DNA of 64,000 nt, from positions 1 to 64,000 of IMG/VR virus record IMGVR_UViG_3300028131_000823; one strand, written 5' to 3'. The notes beneath the pieces are model-generated. The model searched no databases, was not told where the DNA came from, and saw only the letters and a list, made by a program, of their open reading frames with translations. This document shows, in pieces, positions 105 to 63,884 of the stretch. Positions within the stretch are counted from its first letter, which is position 1; every line of letters starts with the position of its first letter. The position numbers and the translations under genes are program-made.

Positions 105-193
105 TTGTTAATAACTTTTGAAAAAAAGCGGTCCAGGATTTTCACGGGTCGCTTTTTTTGTTTATATTAGTATTATAATTAAAACTTAAAAAA
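105..193 (+). promoter_or_regulatory. Conserved ~90 bp upstream element, copy 1 (putative early promoter)
   Basis: TGTTAATAACTTT...TTTTCACGGGTC-N11-TTATATTAGTATTATAATTAAAACTTAAA, also at 7224 and 62153, each directly before an ATG. Confidence 0.75.
121..159 (+). terminator. Intrinsic terminator-like hairpin after hsp20, overlapping the conserved element
   Basis: AAAAAAAGCGGTCC...GGGTCGCTTTTTTT inverted repeat with T7 tract. Confidence 0.55.
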
Positions 194-797: not shown

Positions 798-1151
798 ATG
801 AAAGATTATTTTGACAACGAGGATTATGATGATTTGTTTGATGATGAAAACAATAATCGTAGAGGAAGTGAATCATTTAATAGTTTAGATGATTTTAACG
901 AAGCTGATTTTAAAGATTTAATTGAAAAATTAAAAAGGGTTAGAGAAGAACAATTAATTATGGAAAACTATAACAACATTGTAAAACAAGGAGTAGACGT
1001 TGAAGGTATTGCCGAATATGGTGAAGATAATTTAAATAGACTAAAACAGACTCTTGATATTATGATTGAGTTTTTTGAAGATAGAGAAGATTATGAAAAA
1101 TGCCATGATGTTAAATTATTTTCAGATCAAATAAAAGAAATTGAATTTTGA
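798..1151 (+). CDS. Hypothetical protein with C-terminal UVR-like (EDYEKC) motif
   Basis: IEFFEDREDYEKCHDVKL; GATAAATA motif at 783. Confidence 0.7.
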   Translation: MKDYFDNEDYDDLFDDENNNRRGSESFNSLDDFNEADFKDLIEKLKRVREEQLIMENYNNIVKQGVDVEGIAEYGEDNLNRLKQTLDIMIEFFEDREDYEKCHDVKLFSDQIKEIEF

Positions 1152-1468
1152 AAACAATAAAAACATTTGAAAGTTTTATTTCTGAAAAGAAAAAGAATAA
1201 CACTACTACTAAAATAAAAGCTGTAACTAAAAAACAGAAAAAAGCAGTTAAAAAAGTTAAGAAGTTTTTAAAGAAAGATAAAAAAATAACCAGCGACGTT
1301 AAAGATGGTAAAGCAGATAGTTCTGATAAAATGAGAAGTATGTTATTTAAATTACAGGCTAAGGGCGCGAAGGTTGATGTGCAAAAGACTGATTTAAAAA
1401 AGAAAGAATTAGAAGTTAGATCTAAATTAGATACTATTAGAAAATCTAAAAAGAAAGAAGACGAATGA
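1148..1468 (+). CDS. Lys-rich basic protein with capsid-targeting-like N-terminus
   Basis: MKTIKTFESFISE followed by a very Lys-rich body; start overlaps the upstream stop. Confidence 0.65.
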   Translation: MKTIKTFESFISEKKKNNTTTKIKAVTKKQKKAVKKVKKFLKKDKKITSDVKDGKADSSDKMRSMLFKLQAKGAKVDVQKTDLKKKELEVRSKLDTIRKSKKKEDE

Positions 1469-7223: not shown

Positions 7224-7314
7224 TTGTTAATAACTTTTGAAAAAAAGTGTTAAAAAGTTTTCACGGGTCAAAGATTATAGTTATATTAGTATTATAATTA
7301 AAACTTAAAAAAAC
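7224..7314 (+). promoter_or_regulatory. Conserved ~90 bp upstream element, copy 2 (putative early promoter)
   Basis: 52 bp (7258-7309) identical to 62188-62239. Confidence 0.8.
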
Positions 7315-20826: not shown

Positions 20827-22026
20827 ATGATAGAAAAACAGAATGCTGACTTTTTTGATAAAGATGGCAATTTCGACTGGGATGGATATGAATCAACGTG
20901 TCCAAAAATTTTAAGAACCCCAAACCCACACATAAAAGTAGTAAACGATAAGCATAAAGTATATAGTAGAGAGCCATATGCTCAAGAAATGTATAATAAG
21001 CTTATAGGTCACATTGAAGAAAATGACATTATTACTCATATTAAATATGGATCTGCTTATAATGGTAAAGTTTTTGCAGTTACAGACATGACTGCAAGTA
21101 TTGACATTGGCTACAGACAGCTTGTTTATGTTAATTTAGAAAAAGAGGATGATGAATTCAAAGGCATGCAAACTGGAGATGAGGTTAGTGTTATTATTAC
21201 ATCATTGATGGAAGATGATAGACAACCTATAATGGGCAGTGTTAGTGAAGGAACTAAACAGGCTACTTTCCAAGAAATGTTAGGTGCTATTGAAGAACAA
21301 GATACTGCATGGGTCGGTACAGTTACTAGAATGCTATCTGCTGCTGGTTATATGGTTAATGTTAAGGGTATAGAGTGTTTTATGCCAGGTAGTCTTGCAG
21401 GCATTAATAAATTACATGATTTTGAAAGCATAGTAGGACAAGAAATCTATGTTGTACCTGTTAGTTTTTCTAAAGAAAGAAAAATAATGGTTGTATCTCA
21501 TAGAGCATATCTTAAAACATTAATTCCAGATGCTATTGAAAAATTAAAAGAAACGGCAGGTGAATATATTACTGGAAGTGTTACAGGTTCTGCTAAATAT
21601 GGAGTTTTCTGTGAATTCTCACAATGTTTAACTGGTATGATTCATGTTAATGATTTAGATGGAGATACATTGGCTAGACATAAAAATAGAGAAATAGAAC
21701 CGGGTGAAGAGATTAAGTTTAAAGTAAAAGATATTGTATCTGATACTAAAATAACCTTGACTCAAAGAGACGATGTCGAATTAAATCCATGGTTAGAAAT
21801 TAATAAGAAATTTAAAGTACCTTCTGAGGTTGAGGCTACTGTAAAAACTTGTAAAGATTATGGTTTATTCGTGGAGTTAGAAGAAGGCATTGTTGGACTA
21901 TTACATGTTAGTGAAATTGGAGAAGACAATATTAAAAAATACCGGCCAAAACAAACTATCAACGTTTTAATTACTAAAATAGAAGAAGATACTAAGAAGA
22001 TATTCTTAAAATTACCTAAGGAATAA
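20827..22026 (+). CDS. rpsA: Ribosomal protein bS1-like protein (about four S1 domains)
   Basis: Repeated S1/OB units: G-x-V...GIECFMPGS...VGQEI...VVSHRAYL; ITGSVTG...YGVFCEF...GMIHVND; EATVK...YGLFVELEEGIVGLLHVSEI. Confidence 0.8.
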   Translation: MIEKQNADFFDKDGNFDWDGYESTCPKILRTPNPHIKVVNDKHKVYSREPYAQEMYNKLIGHIEENDIITHIKYGSAYNGKVFAVTDMTASIDIGYRQLVYVNLEKEDDEFKGMQTGDEVSVIITSLMEDDRQPIMGSVSEGTKQATFQEMLGAIEEQDTAWVGTVTRMLSAAGYMVNVKGIECFMPGSLAGINKLHDFESIVGQEIYVVPVSFSKERKIMVVSHRAYLKTLIPDAIEKLKETAGEYITGSVTGSAKYGVFCEFSQCLTGMIHVNDLDGDTLARHKNREIEPGEEIKFKVKDIVSDTKITLTQRDDVELNPWLEINKKFKVPSEVEATVKTCKDYGLFVELEEGIVGLLHVSEIGEDNIKKYRPKQTINVLITKIEEDTKKIFLKLPKE

Positions 22027-46679: not shown

Positions 46680-46693
46680 AAGATATATAACTT

Positions 46694-47062
46694 ATGAAAA
46701 CATTTATAGAATATTTAGAAGAAAACAGAGTTACTGAAAAGGAAATGCAACTTTTAACAGAAGGACTTCAACAAGAATGGACTCCTGAACTAGAAGAAAA
46801 AGTAGATAAAGCAGTTGATGAATTTTTAAACGAATACAGAGATAAAAATGGAGACTTAGATGTTGATAGATTTAATAATGAAATGACTAATGAAGGTCTT
46901 TTAGGTTCCATTGTAGGTGGTCTTGCTGGATTTGCTTTAGGAAAATCTATTGGAAAAATGGTAGCTAAAGTATTAGGTGTACAAAAAGGTATTCTATATG
47001 ATTTATTAACTTCACGACTCGTTGGAACTGCAATCGGAGCTTCAATCGGTAAAAGGTTTTAA
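46694..47062 (+). CDS. CTS-bearing protein with C-terminal glycine-zipper membrane segment
   Basis: MKTFIEYLEE; GLLGSIVGGLAGFALG...LVGTAIGASIG; GATATATAA at 46682. Confidence 0.7.
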   Translation: MKTFIEYLEENRVTEKEMQLLTEGLQQEWTPELEEKVDKAVDEFLNEYRDKNGDLDVDRFNNEMTNEGLLGSIVGGLAGFALGKSIGKMVAKVLGVQKGILYDLLTSRLVGTAIGASIGKRF

Positions 47063-52208: not shown

Positions 52209-52259
52209 TATTTAAGGTGATATATAATTATAATATAGTAATAAAAAAACATAATAAAA

Positions 52260-52994
52260 ATGGAAACACAAATTCAATCATTTGCTACATTTTCTGAAAC
52301 TAGAAAAGCAGCAATAGACACTAAGATAAAAGAAGAAGCGTCTACAAAGAGAACAACTGAAGCTCAAAGATTTGCTGACTTATTAGCTGAGTATGAAGTA
52401 ACCACTGTTGCTGAAATAGCTGAAGAACAAAGAACTGAATTTTTTGCTAAATTAGTTGGAGAAACTGATGAGGTAGAAACTGAAGGTAATGCATTTGGAG
52501 CAGCTGTTAAAAAAGCAAAAGAAGAAGATAAAGAAGAATTTAAAGTAGGCGGAGAAACTTACAAAGTAGAAGAATCAACAGTTACCGAAGCTAGAGCTAA
52601 ATATGTAAATACACAAAAAACAGTAGATGGTAATCCATTAATATCTTTTAATAGCTCCACTACTAGAGCTAAATGGATTGATGAAAATAAATCAAATGTT
52701 ATATCTGTACCTGATTCAACGGTTATTAATTCCGATCAAGGTAGAGTAGTAGGTTCTAGTAGAGGTCCTTATTACTTAATCGTAAAGGCAGATGTACTAG
52801 AAGAATCTAAAGTTGAAGAAGCTGAAGTTAAGTCTGATGAAGATTTTATGGAGATGGCTATGACAATGTATAAAGAAGCATTCGGTGATGATTTTGACGA
52901 GGCTAAAGCTAAAGAAGCTGCTGAAGGAATGTTAAAGAAAGCTGATGGAGACTATGGAGCTGCTGTAGGAATGTTACAATCATCTTTAGGATAA
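52260..52994 (+). CDS. Acidic internal-head/core-like protein with CTS-like N-terminus
   Basis: METQIQSFATFSE; several x-x-E^A/G sites (ETE^G, VTE^A, VEE^A); GATATATAA at 52219. Confidence 0.6.
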   Translation: METQIQSFATFSETRKAAIDTKIKEEASTKRTTEAQRFADLLAEYEVTTVAEIAEEQRTEFFAKLVGETDEVETEGNAFGAAVKKAKEEDKEEFKVGGETYKVEESTVTEARAKYVNTQKTVDGNPLISFNSSTTRAKWIDENKSNVISVPDSTVINSDQGRVVGSSRGPYYLIVKADVLEESKVEEAEVKSDEDFMEMAMTMYKEAFGDDFDEAKAKEAAEGMLKKADGDYGAAVGMLQSSLG

Positions 52995-53009
52995 AAATAA
53001 AATATAGAC

Positions 53010-54275
53010 ATGTTATTAACTTACGAACAATTTCTAGTCGAAAAGGCTCAGATAGTAGAGGGTAATTTGATTTTAGAAGGAGGAGCTGCAGGCCACATGC
53101 CTCATCCCTTTGACTATAATGATTTAACTTTCCAAGATTTTAAAACCATTGTTACAAATTCATTACAAGGTGAAATACATTTTGAAGAAGGACCTACTGA
53201 AAAAACAGATGGTCAAAACTTCTTTGTTACAGTAAAGGATGGTCAAGTTCTTTTCTCAAGAAACAAAGGGCAACTAATGGCACCTGTATCTTTAGATGGA
53301 GTTATTAAAATGTTCACGGGCCATGCATCAAAACTAGTAGAAGATACTTTTATCTATGCTGCAACAGATTTAGAAGCTGCATTATTAAGTTTAAGCGATC
53401 ACCAAGAATTTAACAATGGACAAAACTTTCTTAATATGGAGTTAATTTATTCTAAGAACCCTAATGTGATTAATTATGACAGAGATGTTATTCAATTTCA
53501 CGGCATGGCAGAAACTGATGGCAAAGGTAATATAGTTAACATGTCACAGCAAACAGGTGCAAAACTTGCAAGACTTCTTAAAGGTATAGAGGCAGATGTA
53601 CAAAAGACATTTACAATTATTCCTCCACAAATACTTAAACTTCAGAAAAACATAGATTTTGAAAAGAGACAAAGTTATTATCACAGTAAATTAAATGACT
53701 TAAGAGATGAGTTTAATTTATCAGACGGTGACGAAGTTAAAATGTATCATGAAGCATGGTGGAGAAGAGAAATTGAAAAAGATTTTGCAGATATTTCAAG
53801 TGATTTAAAAGAAGGTTTATTTTTAAGATGGGCATACAATGACAAGCAAACTATGAATATGGTTGCTATGAAAAAGATTGCTACTCCCGAACAAATGAAA
53901 AAAATCAAAGAGTTTGATAAGATAAAAGGTAAAAAGTATAAGCAGAATATTTTACCATTTGAAAACTTATTTTTAGAGTTAGGAAAAGATGTATTATTAA
54001 ATGCAAGTAATTTTGTTGCTGCAAATCCTGATTTAGAAAAGAAAAACTTACATGCTAAAATTAGAAAGGCAGCAGCTGACGTTAAACTTAACGGTGACTT
54101 AAAGCAAGTTGCTAAAATCGAAGCTGAATTAGAAAGATTAGAAAGTATTGGAGGTATCGAAGGTATTGTACCAACTGAGGGAATAGTCTTTAAATATAAA
54201 GGTAAGATTATGAAACTTACCGGCACATTTGCTGCAATTAATCAGCTTATGGGCATCATAAAATACGGAAGATAA
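53010..54275 (+). CDS. Ligase-superfamily nucleotidyltransferase-like protein with CTS-like N-terminus
   Basis: MLLTYEQFLVE, ILE^GGAAGH; motif I TEKTDG, SRNK, motif III LNMEL, motif IV EGIVF, motif V KIMKLTG. Confidence 0.6.
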   Translation: MLLTYEQFLVEKAQIVEGNLILEGGAAGHMPHPFDYNDLTFQDFKTIVTNSLQGEIHFEEGPTEKTDGQNFFVTVKDGQVLFSRNKGQLMAPVSLDGVIKMFTGHASKLVEDTFIYAATDLEAALLSLSDHQEFNNGQNFLNMELIYSKNPNVINYDRDVIQFHGMAETDGKGNIVNMSQQTGAKLARLLKGIEADVQKTFTIIPPQILKLQKNIDFEKRQSYYHSKLNDLRDEFNLSDGDEVKMYHEAWWRREIEKDFADISSDLKEGLFLRWAYNDKQTMNMVAMKKIATPEQMKKIKEFDKIKGKKYKQNILPFENLFLELGKDVLLNASNFVAANPDLEKKNLHAKIRKAAADVKLNGDLKQVAKIEAELERLESIGGIEGIVPTEGIVFKYKGKIMKLTGTFAAINQLMGIIKYGR

Positions 54276-54282
54276 ATATACT

Positions 54283-56241
54283 ATGATAATTAATTATAAT
54301 CAATTTATTTTAGAAAACGAAGATAAGGAATATGAGAAGTTAGATGCGAAAGCAGGTGACATGTCAAAAAAGTTAACCGATAAGGAGAGAGCACGTTATA
54401 AAGAATTAAGTAAAAAACATTTCCCAATAGTTATTAAAAAATTACCTGGAGATGTTTATGAAATTAAGACAGTAGGTTTAGGATATACAGGCCCACAAGG
54501 AGATGTGTTAGCAGAATATTATAGAGAAGAAATTTTAGCAAAGGTAAAAAATCCAAAAGGTATTCACATGGATATTAGAAGAAATGATGGAGGACAACAG
54601 GCTCCAGCTAAGGCAATATTGGATTTTTTTGTAGATACACCTAAAGACGAAGATGGAAATAGAAAAATTCCATTAGAACAACAAAGTAATTATTGGCCAA
54701 CTGATGAATGGACAGATGAAGATAGAGAAAGAGGTTATCAATCGAAGACTAATTATTTAGAAAGTAAAATAGAAGATAAGAATAAATTTACAAATATACC
54801 TACAGTGGTTTCCACAAGTGATTGGACATTTTCAGGAGGTGAATTCTTAACTGACACTATAAAAAACTTTGGCAAAGACAACATTACACACGTTGGCTCT
54901 AATTCAGGAGGAGGAGCAAATAGAACGTCACATACTGCCGACGACATGGCATCAACTTGGCCAGATGAAGATCCAAATGCTGAAGGATTATCAGTTGATG
55001 AAAAGTTAGAAAGATCAATGAAAGTATTTGAAAAGTTTTATGTAGATAAAGAAAAAGCCAAAGAATGTAGAGAAGCAGTTATGAAAGATCCTAGTAAATA
55101 TATTAAGGATGGAAAAATAAACGATAAAACAGTTCAAGACAAAATGCGTGAAATTACAAAAGATTTTCATGTAGCATATTTTACAAGAGAAGATGGAAAA
55201 ATTGAAGTAGCGACGCCTTATGGAAAATCTGATAGGATAGTAACTGATAAAGATGGTAAGCCATTTGGACCTCCTTATGAATTTAAAGGAAATTGGGAAG
55301 GAACAGGAACAGGAAATGCAGTACCAGGAATAGGAATTACAGAAACAGATCCAGATACTGCTAAAAACAGCGCATTAGAATTACTATATACAAAGACTGG
55401 TCAGAAAGATCAGCTTGAAAAAATGAAATCAAATCCAAAAGAATTTGGTCTTACTAAAGACGGCAAAGATGATTGGTATAAAAGAGGTACACTTGCAGAT
55501 AGAGAAGCAGGTAGAGAACATAATTACCCAGGATATGCAGCTGAAGGAAAACACCCTGAAATGTGGAAAGCTAGCCAAAAGGCAGCAAGTAAAAATATGA
55601 AAAACTGGAAAAGCATTCTTAAAAAAGCAGAGTCTAATAAAAATATAGATGATAAATCTAAACCAGAGCCTGAAAATTGGTGGGAAGAATACAGTGATGA
55701 AGCAAAGGCCAAATATATTAAAAAACACGGAGAGGCTCCAGACGTCGGTAATAAAGTAAAACCAACTAATGAAAATAAAAGAAATATTATGAAAAAGGTT
55801 AAACTATTTGAAGAATTCTTAAATGAATCAACAATGAATAATTTTAAACCCGAGGTATTGTCTAATAGAGATAAAGTAGATATGAAGCTTTTTAAAAGTT
55901 TAATGCCTAGAACTGCTAAAACGGTTAAAGACGCTGATCGTAGAATTCAAACATGGAAGGGTAATAAAATGTTTGTACATTATCAAGCATTTACAGTTCA
56001 ACCAAATGGTAATAAACCAGATTTACCAACATATAAGTTCCATAATTCACAATATTGGTTAAACGATACTCAATTAGGTTGGGCAGGTAGAGCAGGTGAA
56101 AAGGTAAACATCACTTTATTAACAATAACTGATGTAACTGATCCTGATAATGAAAAAATGTTAGGAGAACTTTATGTTAATACCGATACATATTTACAAG
56201 AACACAATATAGTATTTAACGAGTTAAAGAAAATATCATAA
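54283..56241 (+). CDS. CTS-bearing polyprotein-like ORF with S41 (tail-specific/C-terminal) peptidase domain
   Basis: MIINYNQFILE; HMDIRRNDGG resembles DLRxNxGG; VVSTSDWTFSGGE resembles TxSAAE; HVGSNSGGG resembles VGExTxG; NWEGTG; second CTS MKKVKLFEEFLNE at 55789. Confidence 0.65.
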   Translation: MIINYNQFILENEDKEYEKLDAKAGDMSKKLTDKERARYKELSKKHFPIVIKKLPGDVYEIKTVGLGYTGPQGDVLAEYYREEILAKVKNPKGIHMDIRRNDGGQQAPAKAILDFFVDTPKDEDGNRKIPLEQQSNYWPTDEWTDEDRERGYQSKTNYLESKIEDKNKFTNIPTVVSTSDWTFSGGEFLTDTIKNFGKDNITHVGSNSGGGANRTSHTADDMASTWPDEDPNAEGLSVDEKLERSMKVFEKFYVDKEKAKECREAVMKDPSKYIKDGKINDKTVQDKMREITKDFHVAYFTREDGKIEVATPYGKSDRIVTDKDGKPFGPPYEFKGNWEGTGTGNAVPGIGITETDPDTAKNSALELLYTKTGQKDQLEKMKSNPKEFGLTKDGKDDWYKRGTLADREAGREHNYPGYAAEGKHPEMWKASQKAASKNMKNWKSILKKAESNKNIDDKSKPEPENWWEEYSDEAKAKYIKKHGEAPDVGNKVKPTNENKRNIMKKVKLFEEFLNESTMNNFKPEVLSNRDKVDMKLFKSLMPRTAKTVKDADRRIQTWKGNKMFVHYQAFTVQPNGNKPDLPTYKFHNSQYWLNDTQLGWAGRAGEKVNITLLTITDVTDPDNEKMLGELYVNTDTYLQEHNIVFNELKKIS

Positions 56242-56252
56242 AATTATAAGAA

Positions 56253-58091
56253 ATGGCATTACAGGATTTAAGAACATATTATGAGTCAGTTGAAAAAGAG
56301 GATTTTAATAATCTCTTAGCACAGAAATGTTTAGTTACTGAAAAGATTCAAGCAAGTAGTCTTCATGTAAGAAGAGAAGATAGACTCTTAGAATTTTATA
56401 AATCAGGTAATAAGCAGGCTCTTAATAAAATAGATAGAACAATTGTTTCTTACTATGAAAAAGGTATAGGCCATTTTAAAGCATTATTAGACGAGACTAT
56501 TCAACAGATGCCAAGTGATTGGAAATTTGGATTTGATTATATGGTTAGTGAAAAGACAGTAGACATTGAATATGATACACTTCCAAAAAATAGTCTTATA
56601 TTAACACATATTCAAGTATTAAATGAAGACAGAACCCAGATTAAAAAAGTAATTAGAGATCCTAAGATTTTAGAAAAATGGGCTAATCTTTTAGAAGTTC
56701 AATCGCCTGAGGTTGTTTATGAAGGCATCCTTTCAGATCACCAAAAGGAAAAGTTAGTTAATATACTGAGCTTACAAGGAGAGCAAGCAAAAATAGAATT
56801 ACAAGATTTTGGTTTTTCTTATAGAGCATTTACAACATTTAACGAGTCAATTCATAAGTCAATGTTAAACAATGATATTCATAAAGACATTGATGGATTA
56901 GTTGTAAGTTTTGTAGAGGGCAAATCATTAAAGAACTTTAAACTACAGAGTCCATTAAAAGAAATTAAAGAACAAGAAGAAAGAAAGAGTTCGGATGCGT
57001 ATCAAATTACCGTAGTAAAACTTATTGAATATTTTAATGCGTTTGATTTTAGTGAAATACAACTTGAAAGTAAAGAAGTTGATGAGAGATATTTAGAATT
57101 AATGACAGCAGGTTTTAATTCATTTATAAAAGATAATGGAGCAAGCTTTATTGGCATGAATTTTGATAGCGCAGAGTTTGCAAACAATGAAGCATTTGAT
57201 TTAAATCCAAAAATGATAACAAATCAAGAAACTATTAGGCTTGTTAATGAATCAAGAGAAGTCGCAGAATTATTAAAAATAACATTAGGTACTTTTAGAA
57301 AGAAGAGACAGAAAGAAAATGGAGTTTTAGCAGGAGATGCATTTAATAGTTTAAACGGTATTATAGAAAAGATTGAAGCAAGAATTTACGAAAAAGTAGA
57401 GGAAGATAGTGTAATGGATTTTAAAACATTTAAAATTAACGATACACTTAAGGGACAAACAAATCCAATTAACGAAGGTTTAAAAGTAAACCATCCTGAA
57501 AGAGGAGCTAAAGAAGTTAATATGTTTGTTGGTAGGTTTCAGCCATTCACATTAGGACATGTTAAAGTCGTTGAACATTTGCATAAACAAAATGGACTTC
57601 CAACTGTTATATTTTTAGTTAAAGCTAAAAAGAAAAAGAAAGAAGACAGTTTTAAAAGACCATTTGATGAAACAATGCAGGTAAATATGATAAAACAGGT
57701 GATGAAGGAATATCCTATTGAGACAGTGTATGTTATAGATACCGCAGCAATTGACAAAATGTTTAATGCTATGAGACCTAAGTATGAACCTGTATTATGG
57801 GGAACAGGTAGTGATAGAATGAAAACATATGGCTATCAAGTTAATAACCCAAAATATAGAGGAGAATTAGGAGTTGAAGATAGCTTCAGATTAGAAGAAA
57901 TTCCAAGGACAGACGATAACATTAGTGCAACAAAGGTAAGAAACGCTTTATTAGATGGAGACGAAAAGACATATAAGTCCATGACTCCAAAATCTATGCA
58001 CAAAATGTATAAATTATTAAAACAAACAATGGAAGAAAGTGTTGAACTACAAGAACAAGTTTTAACATTTTCAGAATTTAAAAGCAAATAA
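56253..58091 (+). CDS. Fusion: RNA-ligase-like domain + TxGH nucleotidyltransferase (NMNAT/PPAT/cytidylyltransferase family)
   Basis: VTEKIQAS (degenerate motif I), DIDGLVVSF, NFKL; VGRFQPFTLGH, GTGSDR, ISATKVR; C-terminal VLTFSEFK. Confidence 0.75.
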   Translation: MALQDLRTYYESVEKEDFNNLLAQKCLVTEKIQASSLHVRREDRLLEFYKSGNKQALNKIDRTIVSYYEKGIGHFKALLDETIQQMPSDWKFGFDYMVSEKTVDIEYDTLPKNSLILTHIQVLNEDRTQIKKVIRDPKILEKWANLLEVQSPEVVYEGILSDHQKEKLVNILSLQGEQAKIELQDFGFSYRAFTTFNESIHKSMLNNDIHKDIDGLVVSFVEGKSLKNFKLQSPLKEIKEQEERKSSDAYQITVVKLIEYFNAFDFSEIQLESKEVDERYLELMTAGFNSFIKDNGASFIGMNFDSAEFANNEAFDLNPKMITNQETIRLVNESREVAELLKITLGTFRKKRQKENGVLAGDAFNSLNGIIEKIEARIYEKVEEDSVMDFKTFKINDTLKGQTNPINEGLKVNHPERGAKEVNMFVGRFQPFTLGHVKVVEHLHKQNGLPTVIFLVKAKKKKKEDSFKRPFDETMQVNMIKQVMKEYPIETVYVIDTAAIDKMFNAMRPKYEPVLWGTGSDRMKTYGYQVNNPKYRGELGVEDSFRLEEIPRTDDNISATKVRNALLDGDEKTYKSMTPKSMHKMYKLLKQTMEESVELQEQVLTFSEFKSK

Positions 58092-58092
58092 G

Positions 58093-59103
58093 ATGAGTAT
58101 AAGAACAGATTTTCAAATATTATTAAATAAAGCTATTAAAAGAGAAGATCTTTTAGTAGAAGGAAATATAGGTAAGTATCAATCACTAGGAAGTTTAAAT
58201 AATTTAAAGGCAAAGCAACAAATGTTTGACCTTATTAACAAAGATTATTTTAAAGGAAAATCTCCTTTTTCAAAGAGATTAACTTTAACAGAAATAGATG
58301 ATTCTACAATGCAAGAAGTTTTTACATTAATGAGTGAAGATATTGATGCAGCAAATACAATATTTAATTTAAAAAGAACAGGTATTGGTTCAGGTGAAAT
58401 ATTAATGGCATACCTTGTTGAAAACTTAGTAATAGGAGGAGGTAGTGCAGATGTAGACTTAAACTTATTCGATCCAAAGTCGGGTAAATTTTTAAGTGCT
58501 GGAATAGCAGAATTAAAAGAGGTTACAAGAACAAATGATGGTTTTTTAAAAGGTTGGAGAACAGGCGCAAGGCACGCTGCAATTAGAGCACAGGCTATTG
58601 CGGATATTAGAAATTTATATTTAGCAGTTAGGGATTCTATTACTGAATTAGACCCTACTACAAAGGCTGGTCAAGCTGCAGCAATAAGTGCAGCAAAAGG
58701 AGAATATTCAGCACTACTTAAATATTTTGAAGACCTAGATGCAATACCAGCAGCAGCTGATAGAGATTTTAAACTTAAACAAGGTACAAAAGGTGAAATA
58801 ATCGTAAAGTTTCAAGGGAATGTAATAGGTAATATTGGTGACGCAAAAACAATTTCAGAAATTAATAAGATTTTAAGTCAAGATGTTAATACGAATGTAA
58901 AAACTTATAGGCAAATCGAAGAAGAAGTGGCAAAAGGGTTTGGAGATATAGATGAAAAGTTTGTATTTATTAGAACTACAGGAAAATCTGAAAAGAAAAA
59001 GATACAAGGTATTTATTATAAGGAAAAATTACCTGATAATGCTAAAGAATTAAAAATATCAGAAGTCACTCAAAATACGATTAAAGTTAAAGTAAAAATT
59101 TGA
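58093..59103 (+). CDS. Putative PD-(D/E)xK nuclease-like protein
   Basis: GIGSGEILM...DVD...AELKEV pattern; N-terminal LLVE^G site. Confidence 0.4.
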   Translation: MSIRTDFQILLNKAIKREDLLVEGNIGKYQSLGSLNNLKAKQQMFDLINKDYFKGKSPFSKRLTLTEIDDSTMQEVFTLMSEDIDAANTIFNLKRTGIGSGEILMAYLVENLVIGGGSADVDLNLFDPKSGKFLSAGIAELKEVTRTNDGFLKGWRTGARHAAIRAQAIADIRNLYLAVRDSITELDPTTKAGQAAAISAAKGEYSALLKYFEDLDAIPAAADRDFKLKQGTKGEIIVKFQGNVIGNIGDAKTISEINKILSQDVNTNVKTYRQIEEEVAKGFGDIDEKFVFIRTTGKSEKKKIQGIYYKEKLPDNAKELKISEVTQNTIKVKVKI

Positions 59104-59138
59104 TATATAATAGATAGGACAAAAAATAAAGAAAAAAA

Positions 59139-61592
59139 ATGGCAACATTCGAAGAATTTTTAAACGAAAGAAATATAACTCTTAAAAGAAGATATACTGA
59201 ATCACACCCTTCCCAAACTGTAGGCAATTCAGCTAGAGTTAGAAATGCAATTATCGAAGCATTAAAGGATGGCAAAATAACAGTTGAAGAATTTAATAAT
59301 ATAGTTAGTCAACACTCTTCTGCTCCATCAAAATGGACAAGAGGTAATAAAAGATTTTTCAAAATAGAAGAAGATGGCGTAAGTCTTTCTAAATATGGAA
59401 CAAAAATATTAAATAGCTTAGTTACTGAATCTATAGATGAAGGTTTAAATAAGTCAGATGTTACATATCAATTAGCAATAGATTATACAGGTAGAACTAA
59501 GCCGAAAATTACTAAACTTAATAAGAAAAGACTTGAAATTAAGTACGGTTATAAAATTAGCCCAGAAACGGTAATTGATTCTATCAAGAAGGTTCATCCA
59601 GAAGTAGAACTTAAACATGTTGAATGGTCAGATAAAATGTCAGGTGGAGGTTTTCACATATTTGATATTTTAGAATCTGCAGTTACTGAAGGAACATATG
59701 ACTCAAAAGATCATATAGGATCTACATCAGATGGACAAGGTTCTAATGCTGAGATTTATAAAAAAGGTAGAGGATATTATGTAGTTGTTAGTGGAGAGTA
59801 TGATTATGACTTCGAGGCTAAGAATGACAAAGAACTAATAAATAAGTTAGAAGAATATGAATTTGATTCTTCTGATATTTTAGAATCAGCGATTAATAAT
59901 ATAGAAGAAAATATGATACATAATAATTTTAATGAATTCATTAATAAATCAATTAATGAAAATAACGTACAGGATTTAGATATGGAAGATATGAATCCTA
60001 AAATGGCTAAGCAGCTATTAAACATGGCTAGTAAACAATATAAAAACGAATTTCAAGGATCTTATACTGTAGATAAAGGAAATAAAAAAATGAGGTTTGA
60101 TACTTATAGTGCTTTATTAGCTATGGTAAAGCAAAAAGATTCTGGACCTTATGGTCCTTCATATGGTATTAATATTGGAGGAAATAATGAATTAGAAGAT
60201 TTTGAAGGTAATGTTTTAGGTAAGCTAAATGATAAATCATTATCAAGTGCAATTAGTAGTGTTGCAGCTGCTATGAAAATGGCAGCTAAAAACAGTAATG
60301 AATCAGTAGTTACTGAAGCCAGAGTAAGTGCAAAAAAGTTATTAAAATCAGTTGTAAATGGAGAAAGTAACTCAGTTGAAGGTATTAAACTTTCTAAAGA
60401 AATGGCCCAATCATTTTTAGAGTGGCTAGATCAATCAAGTTATGGTAGAAAATTTAGCGATCTTCCATTTGATAAATTATTTAGTGCAGCATTTAATTGG
60501 GGTATTGAAAGATATGCTAAAGACAATAAACTGAAAAATGAATTAAAAGATTTAAAAACAAAGGCAAAAACAATGAAAGAATCAAAAATATACGAAAGTT
60601 TCAGTGAATTTGTTAATGAATCTTTAGAACTTAATGAAGCATTAAAGAGTTCTAAACTTAGAGGACTTCTTACTATGAAAAGAGGTAGTAAGGCAATTTT
60701 AAAAGCAATTTATGGCTTTAGTAAAATAGAATTAGACAAAATAACAGATGATCAAATAATAGATATTGATCCTAAATTAGGTAAAAAAGCAGAAGGTTTA
60801 GTTGTTTATTATACAACTCAAGAAAAAGACAACCCTTATGCTGATACTTCAAAATCTACATATAATTCTGCTGGTAAAATTCCAGCAAATACAATACTTG
60901 CATTAGGTATGGGAAAAGACGTTGCATATGTTAAAAGAGATTATATTAAGAGAAAAATGACAATGTCTTTAACTACAGATCCTAGAAAATCATCTTATGA
61001 TATTGGAATTAATAAAGAGTATAGAGGCTGGGACGCATCCGGTATTTATAATGTAAAAAGAGTAATTGATGTTGCAGACGCTGCATTTGTAATTAATACT
61101 AACGCTCTTCCAAATACTAAAGGAAAAATTGAAGACAGAGTAAAAGCTAAAGAAGGTGCATTAGCATTTAAATCTGATAAGGAATTTAAAGATGCAAACA
61201 TAGCAAGATATAGAGAAATTCTACAAAAGAGAGCAAGTGAATTACCAATAGATAAATTAGTAGAAGATGCAATTGATGATGCAACTAAGGTTATGAAAGA
61301 TGGTTTAAAAAATCAAGAAAAAAATAAGTACGGAGAACTTATTGCAGGTGTAGGAAAGGACGGTAGAGCTTATAAATTAAATGACATTAGTAATTTTATA
61401 AATGGTTTAATTTCAGACTATGAAAGATGGTCAGGTTATATGGCAACAATTGAAGAGGCTGAAGCTAAATATGGTAAAGATTCTAGAGAATTTGAATGGG
61501 AAGCTAGATATTCTCAAAAAGAATCTGAGGAATACGCAAAGAGAATTAAAGATAAATTAGCTAAACTTAAGAAAAGAAACTTAGCTTGGTAA
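59139..61592 (+). CDS. 817 aa CTS-bearing polyprotein-like internal protein
   Basis: MATFEEFLNE; internal HNNFNEFINK and ESFSEFVNE; repeated IDE^G, VTE^G, VTE^A, LNE^A sites; GATATATAA at 59102. Confidence 0.65.
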   Translation: MATFEEFLNERNITLKRRYTESHPSQTVGNSARVRNAIIEALKDGKITVEEFNNIVSQHSSAPSKWTRGNKRFFKIEEDGVSLSKYGTKILNSLVTESIDEGLNKSDVTYQLAIDYTGRTKPKITKLNKKRLEIKYGYKISPETVIDSIKKVHPEVELKHVEWSDKMSGGGFHIFDILESAVTEGTYDSKDHIGSTSDGQGSNAEIYKKGRGYYVVVSGEYDYDFEAKNDKELINKLEEYEFDSSDILESAINNIEENMIHNNFNEFINKSINENNVQDLDMEDMNPKMAKQLLNMASKQYKNEFQGSYTVDKGNKKMRFDTYSALLAMVKQKDSGPYGPSYGINIGGNNELEDFEGNVLGKLNDKSLSSAISSVAAAMKMAAKNSNESVVTEARVSAKKLLKSVVNGESNSVEGIKLSKEMAQSFLEWLDQSSYGRKFSDLPFDKLFSAAFNWGIERYAKDNKLKNELKDLKTKAKTMKESKIYESFSEFVNESLELNEALKSSKLRGLLTMKRGSKAILKAIYGFSKIELDKITDDQIIDIDPKLGKKAEGLVVYYTTQEKDNPYADTSKSTYNSAGKIPANTILALGMGKDVAYVKRDYIKRKMTMSLTTDPRKSSYDIGINKEYRGWDASGIYNVKRVIDVADAAFVINTNALPNTKGKIEDRVKAKEGALAFKSDKEFKDANIARYREILQKRASELPIDKLVEDAIDDATKVMKDGLKNQEKNKYGELIAGVGKDGRAYKLNDISNFINGLISDYERWSGYMATIEEAEAKYGKDSREFEWEARYSQKESEEYAKRIKDKLAKLKKRNLAW

Positions 61593-62098
61593 TGAACGAA
61601 AACGTTACACCAGCAAATATTGGAGGTATGGGAAATCCTGCCTTTCCACAAGGTGGAGAAGTAGGAAGTGGAGATGTGCCAGCTGGTAAAGGAGATGCTA
61701 AGAAAGAGCAAAAGAAAAAGAAGAAAGAAAGAGAAGAATATCTTAAAAATAGAAAAGAAGAAATGGTACATACTACATTTAGTGGATTTATAAATGAAGC
61801 TAAAATTAAAGATGCTAGAAAAGATTTAGGCTATATTGCATTTCTTGAAGAAATGGCAGAAATTAATAATAGAGACATTCAAAACGCATATGATGTTGCA
61901 CTAAAAGTTTTACAAGATAAAGGTATGAGTGAAAAGGAAGCAATTGGATTTTTAAACTCACCACATGGAAAGTATATGGCAGAATATTTAATTCCAGGTC
62001 AAGATTATAGTCATGAAGCATTCTTAGACAAATTAGATGAATACTATAACGAAAGAATGTTGAAACAATATGCAAAGGATTTTAAAAACCTAGCATAA
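61592..62098 (+). CDS. Hypothetical protein with internal CTS-like motif (likely start ATG 61592)
   Basis: TAATG overlap; MNENVTPANIGGMG...VGSGD; internal MVHTTFSGFINE^A at 61763. Confidence 0.6.
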   Translation: MNENVTPANIGGMGNPAFPQGGEVGSGDVPAGKGDAKKEQKKKKKEREEYLKNRKEEMVHTTFSGFINEAKIKDARKDLGYIAFLEEMAEINNRDIQNAYDVALKVLQDKGMSEKEAIGFLNSPHGKYMAEYLIPGQDYSHEAFLDKLDEYYNERMLKQYAKDFKNLA

Positions 62099-62120
62099 GA
62101 ATAAGTTAGTATTTATAATT

Positions 62121-62154
62121 AAAACCCAAGTTCTCGCAGATCTTGGGTTTTTTT
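62121..62154 (+). terminator. Intrinsic terminator
   Basis: AAAACCCAAG/CTTGGGTTTT 10 bp stem plus T tract. Confidence 0.8.
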
Positions 62155-62243
62155 GTTAATAACTTTAGTAAAAAAGTTGCCTCAAAATTTTCACGGGTCA
62201 AAGATTATAGTTATATTAGTATTATAATTAAAACTTAAACTAG
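62153..62243 (+). promoter_or_regulatory. Conserved ~90 bp upstream element, copy 3 (putative early promoter)
   Basis: 52 bp identical to copy 2. Confidence 0.8.
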
Positions 62244-62519
62244 ATGAGCTATACAAATTTTAACAGACATGAATCAATGAATTCAGAAACTAGAAAAGAA
62301 ATCATGAACTTAATTAATGATTTAATAAATTACGATGAACAAATAGATAAAAAATTAAGAAGATCTATTGAAAACAAATTATATGGTTTATTTGATGGTT
62401 ATTTATATGATAAACTTCAATTGAATGCATTAGAATGTCCAAGTGATTTAGCAAGTAGAATTATGAAAATATATCATAAATGTGCAATGTACCCAAAGTC
62501 AAAAACAATTATATTTTAA
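62244..62519 (+). CDS. Hypothetical protein (putative early gene)
   Basis: 91 aa directly behind conserved element copy 3. Confidence 0.7.
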   Translation: MSYTNFNRHESMNSETRKEIMNLINDLINYDEQIDKKLRRSIENKLYGLFDGYLYDKLQLNALECPSDLASRIMKIYHKCAMYPKSKTIIF

Positions 62520-62557
62520 TCTGATATATAATATAATATTAAAAATAAAATAACAAG

Positions 62558-62980
62558 ATGAACAATATTAAGAATTTTAACGACTTTATTAATGAGTCTC
62601 AAGAAATAAACGAAGGTACTCGTTCTCAATTTGGAAAAATTGATAAAAAAGGAAATATAACTTCAGTTTATATGCATTATGATGGTTATCCAGAAAACGT
62701 ATTACCTATTTTAAGAAAAGGTTATAAAGGTGGAAAAAATGTAGATTATGTACTTTCACAAGGAAGTGGTTCAGGTCTTGAAGTAAATCCTAAGAAAATT
62801 AACTTTTATAAAGATGATAGAGATTCTCAATCAACTGGTAATGTTGCAACAATTGCAAATTATTTATCAGATGTAGAAGATGATGGTGGAGCAGAATACG
62901 TTTATTTATGGGATGAAAGATCAAAGCAATGGATGATGGCATCTTATGGTGAAAGAGACTTAAAGGTTGCAGAAGTTTAA
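62558..62980 (+). CDS. CTS-bearing hypothetical protein (YxHYDGYP family)
   Basis: MNNIKNFNDFINE, INE^G, VYMHYDGYP, AEYVYLW; GATATATAA at 62523. Confidence 0.7.
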   Translation: MNNIKNFNDFINESQEINEGTRSQFGKIDKKGNITSVYMHYDGYPENVLPILRKGYKGGKNVDYVLSQGSGSGLEVNPKKINFYKDDRDSQSTGNVATIANYLSDVEDDGGAEYVYLWDERSKQWMMASYGERDLKVAEV

Positions 62981-62996
62981 AAAAATTAAAGTAACA

Positions 62997-63308
62997 ATGA
63001 AAAACGTAAAATTATTCGAAGAATTTATAAACGAAGATATTGACTCAAATAAAATATTTGAATTAACTGAACTAGAAAAAAAAATTAATGGCTTTACAGG
63101 CCAAGCACAGGTAAAAGCTAAAGTTGGAGTAACGACATTTTCTGTTTCAAAATACATGATAGTGTTTGATTATGACGAAGCTAATAAAGATTTACCATTT
63201 GTATTTAGACCAGATATGAAATCTGCAAAAGTAGCAAAGGATAAATTAGAAAAAACTGACATGTTTACTCCTGAAATGAACTTAAGAATTGAAGAAATTA
63301 AATATTAA
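62997..63308 (+). CDS. CTS-bearing hypothetical protein (likely start ATG 62997)
   Basis: MKNVKLFEEFINE. Confidence 0.7.
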   Translation: MKNVKLFEEFINEDIDSNKIFELTELEKKINGFTGQAQVKAKVGVTTFSVSKYMIVFDYDEANKDLPFVFRPDMKSAKVAKDKLEKTDMFTPEMNLRIEEIKY

Positions 63309-63326
63309 AATTAAAAAAACAAAGTT

Positions 63327-63782
63327 ATGAAAAATATAAAATTATTCGAAGAGTTTATCAATGAAAACGATATGATGGCTACAACGCCAGCAGAACTTAA
63401 AAAAATGGCTAAAAAATTTAAACAAATCCATTATGACATGGCCTCCGGTGATTTTGAAGAGGAAGATATAGATGCAAACTTTAAATTTATAACAGACTTT
63501 CTTGGAACAGACCAAATAGTTGAAATAGTTGGAGGAGACCATTGGGCTAATCATTCTTCTGGAAAAGAATTAACAGACATTTATAATGATTTAATCACTA
63601 AGATTAAAAACAAGAAAGACCATGAATTAGATTCAGGAGCAGACTATGTTACAGGTACATTAAATGGAGCAAAGGTAGTTTGTCAATACGATGGTTACAG
63701 TACCCCTACTCATTTATCAATTATGATAAACGTTAATGACATTAAAAAGTTTGACATTAAAACAACACCTTTTGTAGTTTAA
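63327..63782 (+). CDS. CTS-bearing hypothetical protein
   Basis: MKNIKLFEEFINE. Confidence 0.7.
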   Translation: MKNIKLFEEFINENDMMATTPAELKKMAKKFKQIHYDMASGDFEEEDIDANFKFITDFLGTDQIVEIVGGDHWANHSSGKELTDIYNDLITKIKNKKDHELDSGADYVTGTLNGAKVVCQYDGYSTPTHLSIMINVNDIKKFDIKTTPFVV

Positions 63783-63827: not shown

Positions 63828-63859
63828 AAAGGAGATTGTATGAAACAATCTCCTTTTTT
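63828..63859 (+). terminator. Intrinsic terminator overlapping a class-2 promoter
   Basis: AAAGGAGATTGT/ACAATCTCCTTT perfect 12 bp stem plus T tract; AAAC 63843 + N16 + ATATAAG 63863. Confidence 0.75.
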
Positions 63860-63884
63860 AGTATATAAGTTTTAAAATAACTAT

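Follow-up and report, generated by a model that had tools for sequence, protein, structure and literature searches.

A candidate T4-type capsid-targeting tag on the proteins of a variable gene island in a marine phage

The island and its shared N-terminal tag

The window analysed here is a stretch of 64,000 nucleotides (positions 1 to 64,000 of IMG/VR virus record IMGVR_UViG_3300028131_000823), and near its end lies an island of 11 open reading frames (ORFs; 52260-63782), most of which carry the same short peptide motif at their N-termini, referred to below as the tag. ORFs are named by their first nucleotide in the window. All window genes are on the + strand, the DNA is ~30% GC, and no tRNAs were found in the window. 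A baseplate and tail module (~13.7-47 kb), with baseplate wedge proteins and an OB domain like that of gp5, is followed by gp32, a UvsW-type helicase and then the island. A JGI marine contig of 144,856 bp matches the window at 100% identity (overlaps checked). On a 204,977-bp IMG/VR contig, two of the island genes recur with order and lengths unchanged, and their N-termini are identical over the part compared. The nearest public phage record was LR756500.1 (462 kb, uncultured phage), which is syntenic with window 11-58 kb at 26-56% protein identity; 2 of the 11 island ORFs are conserved in it. When the island was compared with phage records by megablast, nothing matched. Further relatives were Lak megaphages of Prevotella, 630-735-kb "huge phages" and Tenacibaculum jumbo phages. 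LR756500.1, Tenacibaculum jumbo phages and Lak megaphages form the clade to which the window phage belongs, and because these are its relatives, its host is probably a marine member of Bacteroidota.

A shared N-terminal motif in the island had been described in an earlier reading made from the sequence only (hereafter the sequence-only reading), and the ORFs and N-termini were as it gave them. Eight of the 11 ORFs are tagged: 52260, 53010, 54283, 59139, 62558, 62997, 63327 and the 61592 ORF, in which the tag starts at an internal Met (nt 61763). Tags are 10-13 aa long and begin at the initiator Met. The long form, always at that position, has 13 residues (M-K-x-[IV]-K-x-F-x-x-F-[IL]-x-E), and the short form has 10-11, the length of the T4 tag. 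Aromatics at -7 and -4 from the Glu are present in all strong tags, every one of which closes with [ILV]-x-E; in Glu-less tags (the 59139 internal tag, P0123) a second I-N-E stands 4 residues further on. The strict motif F-x-[ED]-F-[ILV]-x-E was found 6 times in the 71 window proteins (0.10 in shuffles) and 4 times within their first 20 residues (0.008 expected). A scan with an 8-column matrix gave 8 N-terminal matches in the window where 0.17 were expected, and 22 against 2.5 in LR756500.1, where the tags are scattered across the genome.

Strong internal copies of the tag occur in 54283 and 59139, at module junctions (aa 503-515, and ~aa 263-274 and 487-500, respectively), and in the 61592 ORF. 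Outside the island, the window has tags on 1148 and 46694 and, weakly, on 8066. Past the window, the same contig has them on a 400-aa ORF flanked by the ribonucleotide reductase (RNR) genes and the second fragment of DNA polymerase B, as well as on a 114-aa ORF between the portal and protease genes. Over 93 kb of contig, replication, nucleotide-metabolism and tail proteins had 0 N-terminal tags; the motif is thus not equally common on replication and metabolic genes, the outcome that the sequence-only reading had named as speaking against it.

The spread of the tag was examined by searching IMG/VR with a degenerate DNA pattern for M-K-x-x-K-x-F-E-E-F-I-N-E. This revealed 38 loci with 44 ORFs, on contigs that reach 256 kb and range from 25 to 39% GC. 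All 44 ORFs begin at the tag, with a stop codon ≤12 codons upstream; with the tag removed, 42 IMG/VR ORFs were sorted into 14 unrelated families. One of the tagged contigs also encodes an S77 protease. When 596 Gb of genomes from bacteria and archaea were searched with the same pattern, the single match was a 36-aa ORF. Judged by these searches, the tag appears to be portable and virus-specific. Among orthologues the tag is kept and the linker that follows it is variable (>1262 homologues of 53010; all homologues of 54283). Tagged proteins of LR756500.1 include four leucine-rich repeat (LRR) proteins, a polynucleotide kinase (PNK)-type 3′-phosphatase, a DUF2201 metallopeptidase-VWA protein and the 53010 homologue. 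Five tagged genes are clustered in its structural module (313382-317720; L012:25382-29720), of which four begin M-K-[YF]-I-L-E-Y-E-E-F-L and the fifth, the PNK-type 3′-phosphatase, M-K-Y-I-Q-T-Y-D-D-F-L-N-E; the four tagged LRR proteins lie outside this cluster.

These data bear on two explanations that do not involve the capsid, both of which we reject. Selection at the nucleic-acid or translation level for an A/T-rich start, or a signal to a membrane, secretion or a phage compartment, is very unlikely. The tag codons are A/T-rich and the long form always lies at the initiator Met, as such a reading would have it; however, the amino acids are conserved while codons at synonymous positions vary between tags, the tag is kept across a GC range of 25-39%, and further copies of it stand at internal junctions or close to C-termini. 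It also lacks the hydrophobicity of a signal peptide, and it matches the functional residues of T4 described below. To the idea that the motif is the first helix of one shared domain and the ORFs are paralogues, we give scarcely any credence. Weak BLAST links do exist among 1148, 62997, 63327 and the C-terminal module of 54283 (E 1e-5 to 1e-3), but the alignments are driven by the first 13-30 residues, and similarity among tagged proteins ends at the tag. The 14 unrelated IMG/VR families, a PHROG profile of 62558 that begins past the tag (at residue 20), and a post-tag linker that is variable and disordered in an AlphaFold2 (AF2) model likewise oppose a shared domain.

Likeness to the T4 capsid-targeting sequence and the head genes of the contig

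The first 10 residues of T4 internal protein IPIII are enough for packaging; residues 4 and 7 are the main targeting determinants, residues 8 and 10 govern processing, and the gp21 protease cleaves after L/I-x-E (PMC9026906). The tag keeps all four of these experimentally defined positions as aromatic-x-x-aromatic-[IL]-x-Glu, which bears out the likeness to the T4 capsid-targeting sequence (CTS) that had been proposed. A matrix built from window-phage tags alone was used to score the first 20 residues of 179 T4 ORFs (T4 positions 50-168 kb). IpIII ranked first and IpII second, at 11.4 bits, with all others at ≤5.4; IpI was third and gp22, the scaffold protein, fifth. As far as sequence can address the matter, the tag system appears to agree with the T4 CTS and internal-protein kind in all five testable respects. 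Our overall reading is that the motif is probably a T4-type capsid-targeting and processing propeptide system.

A gp21-family protease and a T4-type head module, which that reading presupposes, are present on the window's own contig (Portal_T4, Peptidase_S77 and Gp23). The module was tied to the window by walking the same JGI contig through overlaps that were 100% identical, and its genes, including the gp23-type capsid gene, lie ~20 kb downstream of the window end. After the island come a split DNA polymerase B, RNR genes, UvsX, DnaB and gp46/47-like genes, followed by a gp15-like gene, gp2, Portal_T4, the tagged 114-aa protein, a 632-aa Peptidase_S77 protein encoded at L103:13117-15015, and a Gp23-family capsid protein. 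The two polymerase ORFs (466 and 402 aa; L016:12401-13801 and L016:18911-20119) are 2.4-10 kb past the window end, and the ~5 kb between them holds both RNR subunits, the tagged 400-aa ORF and a 247-aa ORF. The tagged 114-aa protein has an acidic tail and occupies the position of T4 gp67/68. The capsid protein is ~26% identical to the nearest T4-type capsid protein among the matches listed, that of a cyanophage. In an alignment of the proteases of LR756500.1, PTm1 and T4, which does not contain that of the window phage, the His, Ser and Asp columns are invariant; the LR756500.1 homologue matches 2198 phage records, including T4-like phages. Comparison of the window proteins with 80 IMG/VR protease loci gave no match.

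The C-terminal half of the S77 protein of the window phage is scaffold-like. It contains 9 aromatic-x-x-aromatic-[ILV]-x-[ED] units where 0.17 were expected, mostly at a spacing of 14 residues and with the 14-residue repeats at aa 257-375, and the protease-scaffold protein has 35 [ILV]-x-E sites against 14.5 expected. The same repeat pattern was observed in the protease-scaffold of LR756500.1. The tag looks like one free unit of the scaffold repeat; this suggests joint assembly of tagged proteins with the scaffold and their release by the same cuts.

Candidate cargo proteins, junction sites and promoter-like motifs

The features discussed in this section are listed in Table 1. The largest of the supposed enzymes, 59139, turned out to be a polyprotein of small cassettes rather than a large enzyme. 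Its junctions read ESIDE (aa 97-101), ESAVTE (aa 179-184) and ESVVTE (aa 388-393), in addition to the two internal tag-like stretches given above. The motif ES-x(0-3)-[ILV]-x-E occurs 5 times in 59139 (0.45 expected) and up to 10 times in its homologues (~0.2-0.5 expected), which are mosaics of 545-1262 aa. When these proteins were cut at the motif, the pieces aligned end to end: reciprocal coverage was ≥80% for 400 of 687 segment pairs. The pieces sort into 12 families of modules, 56-125 aa long, whose order varies. A tagged N-terminal module is common to most of the closer homologues, and a ~317-aa C-terminal module was present in 14 of the 14 proteins examined. A stricter junction pattern (ES-x-[IV]-x-E type) was found 8 times in the 93-kb proteome, where 0.47 were expected, with 6 of the sites in island ORFs and 1 in the scaffold. 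No Pfam, PHROG or NCBIfam domain was found in 59139, and hence none of the conflict domains of polyvalent proteins (MPTase, ParB, methylases, anti-restriction). In 52260, an internal junction (ESTVTE, aa 105-110) divides the protein into the tag and two modules. On a contig of another sample (L003:9045-9985), gene calling gives just a 48-aa ORF in place of the 244-aa tagged ORF 52260-52994; the first island gene appears to be disrupted or different in some populations.

The sequence-only reading had named ligase-like, nucleotidyltransferase, protease and nuclease-like enzymes as cargo, and these fared unequally. The ligase-like 53010 is tagged, and its >1262 homologues are all ~421-429 aa with invariant F8 and E11 in the tag; EKTDG, EGxVFK and KLTG are invariant in 17-19 homologues. 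The suggestion of a ligase draws on the KxDG motif and on non-significant fold and profile matches. In the AF2 model, of moderate confidence (pLDDT 63.7), the tag forms a helix (aa 5-12) that is followed by a disordered linker (aa 13-31). The best fold matches were T4 Rnl2 and Rnl1, RNA ligases 2 and 1, with Foldseek E 0.04-0.07 and none at E ≤ 0.001; profile comparison with Rnl2 gave an hhalign E of 0.19, and PDB searches gave no significant match either. We therefore do not name 53010, one of the ORFs conserved in LR756500.1, a ligase; it may be an RNA-ligase-like nucleotidyltransferase. The putative protease 54283 is also tagged; its Peptidase_S41 score (22.6 bits in Pfam) is below the cutoff of 24, although PF03572 is carried by distant homologues. 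The Ser of F-S-G-G-E is invariant, the best PDB match is the non-catalytic IRBP, and what we take to be the position of the S41 catalytic Lys reads G-G-G by eye, so that this canonical residue could not be placed. The second, full 13-aa tag of 54283 (nt 55789-55827) is followed by a 137-aa basic module. One homologue is without the C-terminal module, and another has a junction tag and then a Zeta_toxin/AAA_33 P-loop module, which also occurs as a stand-alone tagged gene. The distant homologues end in a tag-like motif, which recalls T4 Alt, a protein cut at both ends.

The nucleotidyltransferase and the nuclease-like protein do not qualify as tagged cargo. The NMNAT-like 56253 has no N-terminal tag, and neither does its LR756500.1 homologue. 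Its PF01467 score is 33.9 bits (cutoff 21), with weak matches to NMNAT structures (PDB 1f9a) and NCBIfam NMNAT models. Its N-terminal half was considered as a paralogue of 53010, and this was dropped on a non-significant hhalign comparison. The C-terminus of 56253 (58062-58088) has a tag-like L-T-F-S-E-F-K-S-K with the aromatic pair and without the cleavage residues; it is absent from the LR756500.1 homologue and was not counted as a tag, and it may be what is left of a tag formerly carried by the following gene. In Microcystis phage Mel-JY01 (PP395634.1 11243-13162), an untagged homologue of 53010 is fused behind an NMNAT / cytidylyltransferase-like domain. Because of this fusion, and because the genes are neighbours in the window (56253 C-terminus), the NMNAT-like and 53010 functions appear to be linked. 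The nuclease-like candidate, 58093, is untagged and had no match in Pfam, PHROGs, NCBIfam or PDB. Searches of PHROGs, Pfam, NCBIfam and PDB sequences also gave nothing usable for 52260, 59139, the 61592 ORF, 62997 and 63327.

The start of the 61592 ORF (nt 61592-61696) resembles the N-terminal arm of the major capsid protein that the phage itself encodes (BLASTP, 16 of 36 residues identical, E = 6e-7), and its GMG..FP motif was otherwise seen only in capsid proteins. This capsid-arm copy may be a second way to dock to the capsid interior. A similar capsid-arm-like segment is present near the C-terminus of PTm1 ORF-299, which lies between portal and protease. The tag of the 61592 ORF (nt 61763-61798) scored 21.0 bits. 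The start of 62997 is the ATG at that position and not the TTG at 62967, since gene calls on independent contigs give 103 aa. Single-module cargo has a mature size of 10-16 kDa, like the T4 internal proteins, and by analogy the 1148 protein would be the closest counterpart of the small basic ones. The 46694 protein has a glycine-zipper segment, and its gene directly follows those of the baseplate and tail; the LR756500.1 protein in the corresponding position is also tagged, with the same size, the same syntenic place and a similar N-terminus, BLAST homology between the two not being shown.

The claim that a late-type motif precedes the tagged ORFs stood in part. The loose form GATAWATA is not enriched in the window (24 found, 17.8 expected), and the motif heads three operons rather than each ORF; the specific form GATATATAA is enriched, with 12 copies in the window against 2.8 expected. 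It also precedes the baseplate/tail genes 13775, 20827, 22079 and 35618 and, on the contig beyond the window, the gp15-like gene, the tagged head-module gene and the gene after the capsid gene. The product of one of these baseplate/tail genes (20827-22026, 399 aa) is an S1 RNA-binding domain protein (PF00575, 1.8e-26). At several genes GATATATAA ends 3 nt before the ATG (window 46682-46696, gene 46694; beyond the window, ext 85241-85255 and 79733-79747). If it is a -10-like element, the messages of these genes would be leaderless or would start inside the gene. A different 30-nt element, part of a ~87-nt repeat, lies just upstream of the small untagged ORFs 194, 7315 and 62244 (copies at window 161-190, 7280-7309 and 62210-62239) and upstream of a 91-aa ORF beyond the head module (contig L103:19969-20055). 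This element probably represents a promoter class other than that of GATATATAA, early or middle in type, and 62210..62519 is a differently regulated insert within the island.

Table 1. Coordinates of the island genes, of tagged genes elsewhere in the window, and of associated sequence elements.
Feature	Position	Strand	Description
Tagged protein	1148..1468	+	13-aa tag, 20.7 bits; mature part 93 aa, very basic, pI 10.3, 38% K+R
Tagged protein	46694..47062	+	10-aa tag, as long as that of T4; aromatics at positions 4 and 7, then L8 and E10
GATATATAA late-type promoter-like motif	52219..52227	+	heads operon 52260-59103
Tagged acidic 244-aa protein	52260..52994	+	13-aa tag, weak form ending F-S-E, 8.6 bits
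Tagged 421-aa protein	53010..54275	+	11-aa tag, variable linker, conserved core with KxDG and EGxVFK
Tagged 652-aa two-module protein	54283..56241	+	11-aa tag; S41/IRBP-like domain aa 12-502
Untagged 612-aa protein	56253..58091	+	C-terminal NMNAT / cytidylyltransferase-like domain aa 424-584
Untagged 336-aa protein	58093..59103	+	last gene of first operon
GATATATAA late-type promoter-like motif	59102..59110	+	heads operon 59139-62098
Tagged 817-aa cassette polyprotein	59139..61592	+	10-aa tag, nt 59139-59168
168-aa ORF	61592..62098	+	35-aa capsid-arm-like start, K/E-rich linker, 12-aa tag, 99-aa domain
30-nt repeated promoter-like element	62210-62239	+	before untagged 91-aa ORF 62244-62519
Untagged 91-aa ORF	62244-62519	+	behind 30-nt element
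GATATATAA late-type promoter-like motif	62523..62531	+	heads operon 62558-63782
Tagged 140-aa protein, phrog_1987	62558..62980	+	13-aa tag, second INE site after; 19.9 bits
Tagged 103-aa protein	62997..63308	+	13-aa tag, 23.4 bits; six tagged IMG/VR homologues
Tagged 151-aa protein	63327..63782	+	13-aa tag, 23.4 bits; eight tagged IMG/VR homologues
Intrinsic-terminator-like hairpin	63828..63866	+	12-bp stem then T run; closes island

Proposed mechanism and comparison with known systems

In the mechanism that we propose, the tagged proteins would be produced late in infection, alongside the virion proteins. The short N-terminal tag helix, with its aromatics at -7 and -4 from the cut, would bring them into the prohead core, which would consist of the protease-scaffold fusion, its scaffold half being a tandem array of the tag-like unit. 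Once activated, the S77 (gp21-family) protease would cleave after the Glu of [I/L]-x-E, so that the tag comes off and the scaffold is dismantled. The same protease would cleave 59139, 54283, 52260 and the 61592 ORF at their junction tags and ES-x-[IV]-x-E sites, and these cuts would leave small modules of T4 internal-protein size and a few larger proteins inside the head. The freed proteins would remain with the DNA and probably exit with it at infection. We infer prohead incorporation, the cleavage positions, ejection into the host and all cargo functions from the sequence.

Within this scheme, it is conceivable, and we put it forward tentatively as something less than an even chance, that the tag is a free copy of the scaffold repeat unit, that proteins bearing the unit co-assemble into the core and are freed by the scaffold cuts, and that a modular, fast-evolving payload is loaded in this way from a few genes: single proteins, LRR binders (in the relative) and cassette polyproteins. 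The single proteins would then possibly form an RNA end-healing and sealing kit, ligase-like here, with a tagged PNK phosphatase and a P-loop kinase in relatives.

The tagged proteins could instead be head-assembly or structural components that are processed by the protease and then degraded or retained in the capsid, and not injected effectors. Several observations agree with that: the acidic protein at the gp67/68 position is tagged, ~15 related loci have the tag on a 290-390-aa ORF directly after the capsid gene, the 61592 ORF has its capsid N-arm copy, the tags resemble scaffold repeats, and several cargo proteins are acidic, as are T4 core proteins. We nevertheless regard this explanation as unlikely. 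The island is hypervariable, with few of its ORFs conserved in LR756500.1, and the modules are shuffled; such hypervariability and shuffling are typical of arms-race cargo rather than of assembly parts. Tagged LRR binders and a polynucleotide 3′-phosphatase in the relative are not what a structural role would predict, and T4 proteins with such a tag are ejected (PMC9026906).

Several observations weigh against the capsid-targeting reading that we prefer, or against its extension to the scaffold unit. Three island ORFs (56253, 58093 and 62244) had no tag in the matrix scan and are co-transcribed with tagged ones, and the tags on which the matrix was trained were chosen by eye. The score of T4 IpI in the tag-matrix ranking merges with noise. 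T4 gp22 is enriched in [ILV]-x-E and does not have the aromatic repeat, so a tag that is a scaffold unit lacks a T4 precedent. In a cultured relative, Tenacibaculum phage PTm1, 27 kb were examined and no tags of this type appeared; the scaffold repeats of PTm1 are of a different kind. The 3-nt gap between GATATATAA and the ATG is awkward for a promoter. Finally, incorporation, cleavage and ejection of the tagged proteins are predictions.

If the reading is correct, it would have several consequences. The way in which the T4 CTS locates the prohead core is, to our knowledge, a question without a settled answer; tandem CTS-like scaffold units fused to the protease would make its likely partner readable in sequence and provide a concrete model. 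The four-residue CTS code would extend to a very distant, environmentally abundant clade (marine jumbo phages, with Lak megaphages and Tenacibaculum phages as relatives), and mosaic polyproteins with prohead-protease sites would represent a second route of cargo loading. The N-terminal tag together with the junction motif would form a sequence rule that predicts packaged, probably injected proteins in uncultured phages, and counter-defence proteins are likely to be numerous among them. The evidence suggests that the phage packs an exchangeable set of proteins along with its DNA, a principle familiar from T4 but realised in a different way here.

The T4 CTS and internal proteins were reportedly the subject of work by Mullaney and Black in 1996. 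They have since been reviewed (PMC9026906, PMC3012670). The likeness of the tag system to T4 IPI, IPII, IPIII and Alt lies in a short N-terminal propeptide on unrelated proteins, of 10-19 aa in the T4 kind, with aromatics at 4 and 7, I/L at 8 and Glu at 10; in a tag that ends in the site of gp21-family cleavage, L/I-x-E, where the cut is here predicted; and in a variable cargo set, late expression (here by the late-type motif) and the same head genes (portal, protease, gp23). The differences are also plain. The T4 tag has 10 residues, whereas most window-phage tags have 13 through the M-K-x-[IV]-K prefix; T4 has a handful of tagged genes and the window phage about a dozen per 93 kb. In the clade of the window phage, unlike in T4, internal junctions and C-termini can bear tags as well. 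Its protease is fused to a scaffold of tag-like repeats, which T4 gp22 does not have, and part of its cargo consists of cassette polyproteins.

Large enzymatic cargo, which the sequence-only reading had presented as going far beyond the small internal proteins of T4, is not unprecedented: T4 itself packages the large enzyme Alt behind a propeptide of this type, and RNA polymerases are packaged by giant phages (PMC9026906, PMC5694885). In the giant phages phiKZ, 201phi2-1 and SPN3US, many head proteins, including the virion RNA polymerase, are cut after Glu by a gp21 homologue, and the propeptides of phiKZ/SPN3US type hold several cut sites (PMC5694885, PMC7411985, PMC10052503). The resemblance to these phages would be that enzymes are among the proteins predicted to be processed and packaged. 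However, the phiKZ/SPN3US propeptides are long (~80-130 aa), share no short tag and have an S/A-x-E motif, whereas the window phage has a short tag and [IL]-x-E. We know of no description of mosaic cassette polyproteins in phages of the phiKZ/201phi2-1/SPN3US type.

Polyvalent proteins are highly mosaic, have 2-15 domains per polypeptide, are thought to be packaged and delivered with the DNA, and have been proposed to release their domains by proteolysis (Iyer et al. 2017; PMC5512222). The 59139 homologues are like them in having several modules per polypeptide and extensive mosaicism (545-1262 aa, 12 module families). Polyvalent proteins have recognisable enzyme domains, and their release is ascribed to built-in MPTase or other peptidase domains; 59139, in contrast, has small unannotated modules (56-125 aa) with prohead-protease-type sites between them and a CTS-like address at its N-terminus. 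Relative to these known systems, what is new is the link between tag and scaffold repeat and the protease-delimited cassette polyproteins.

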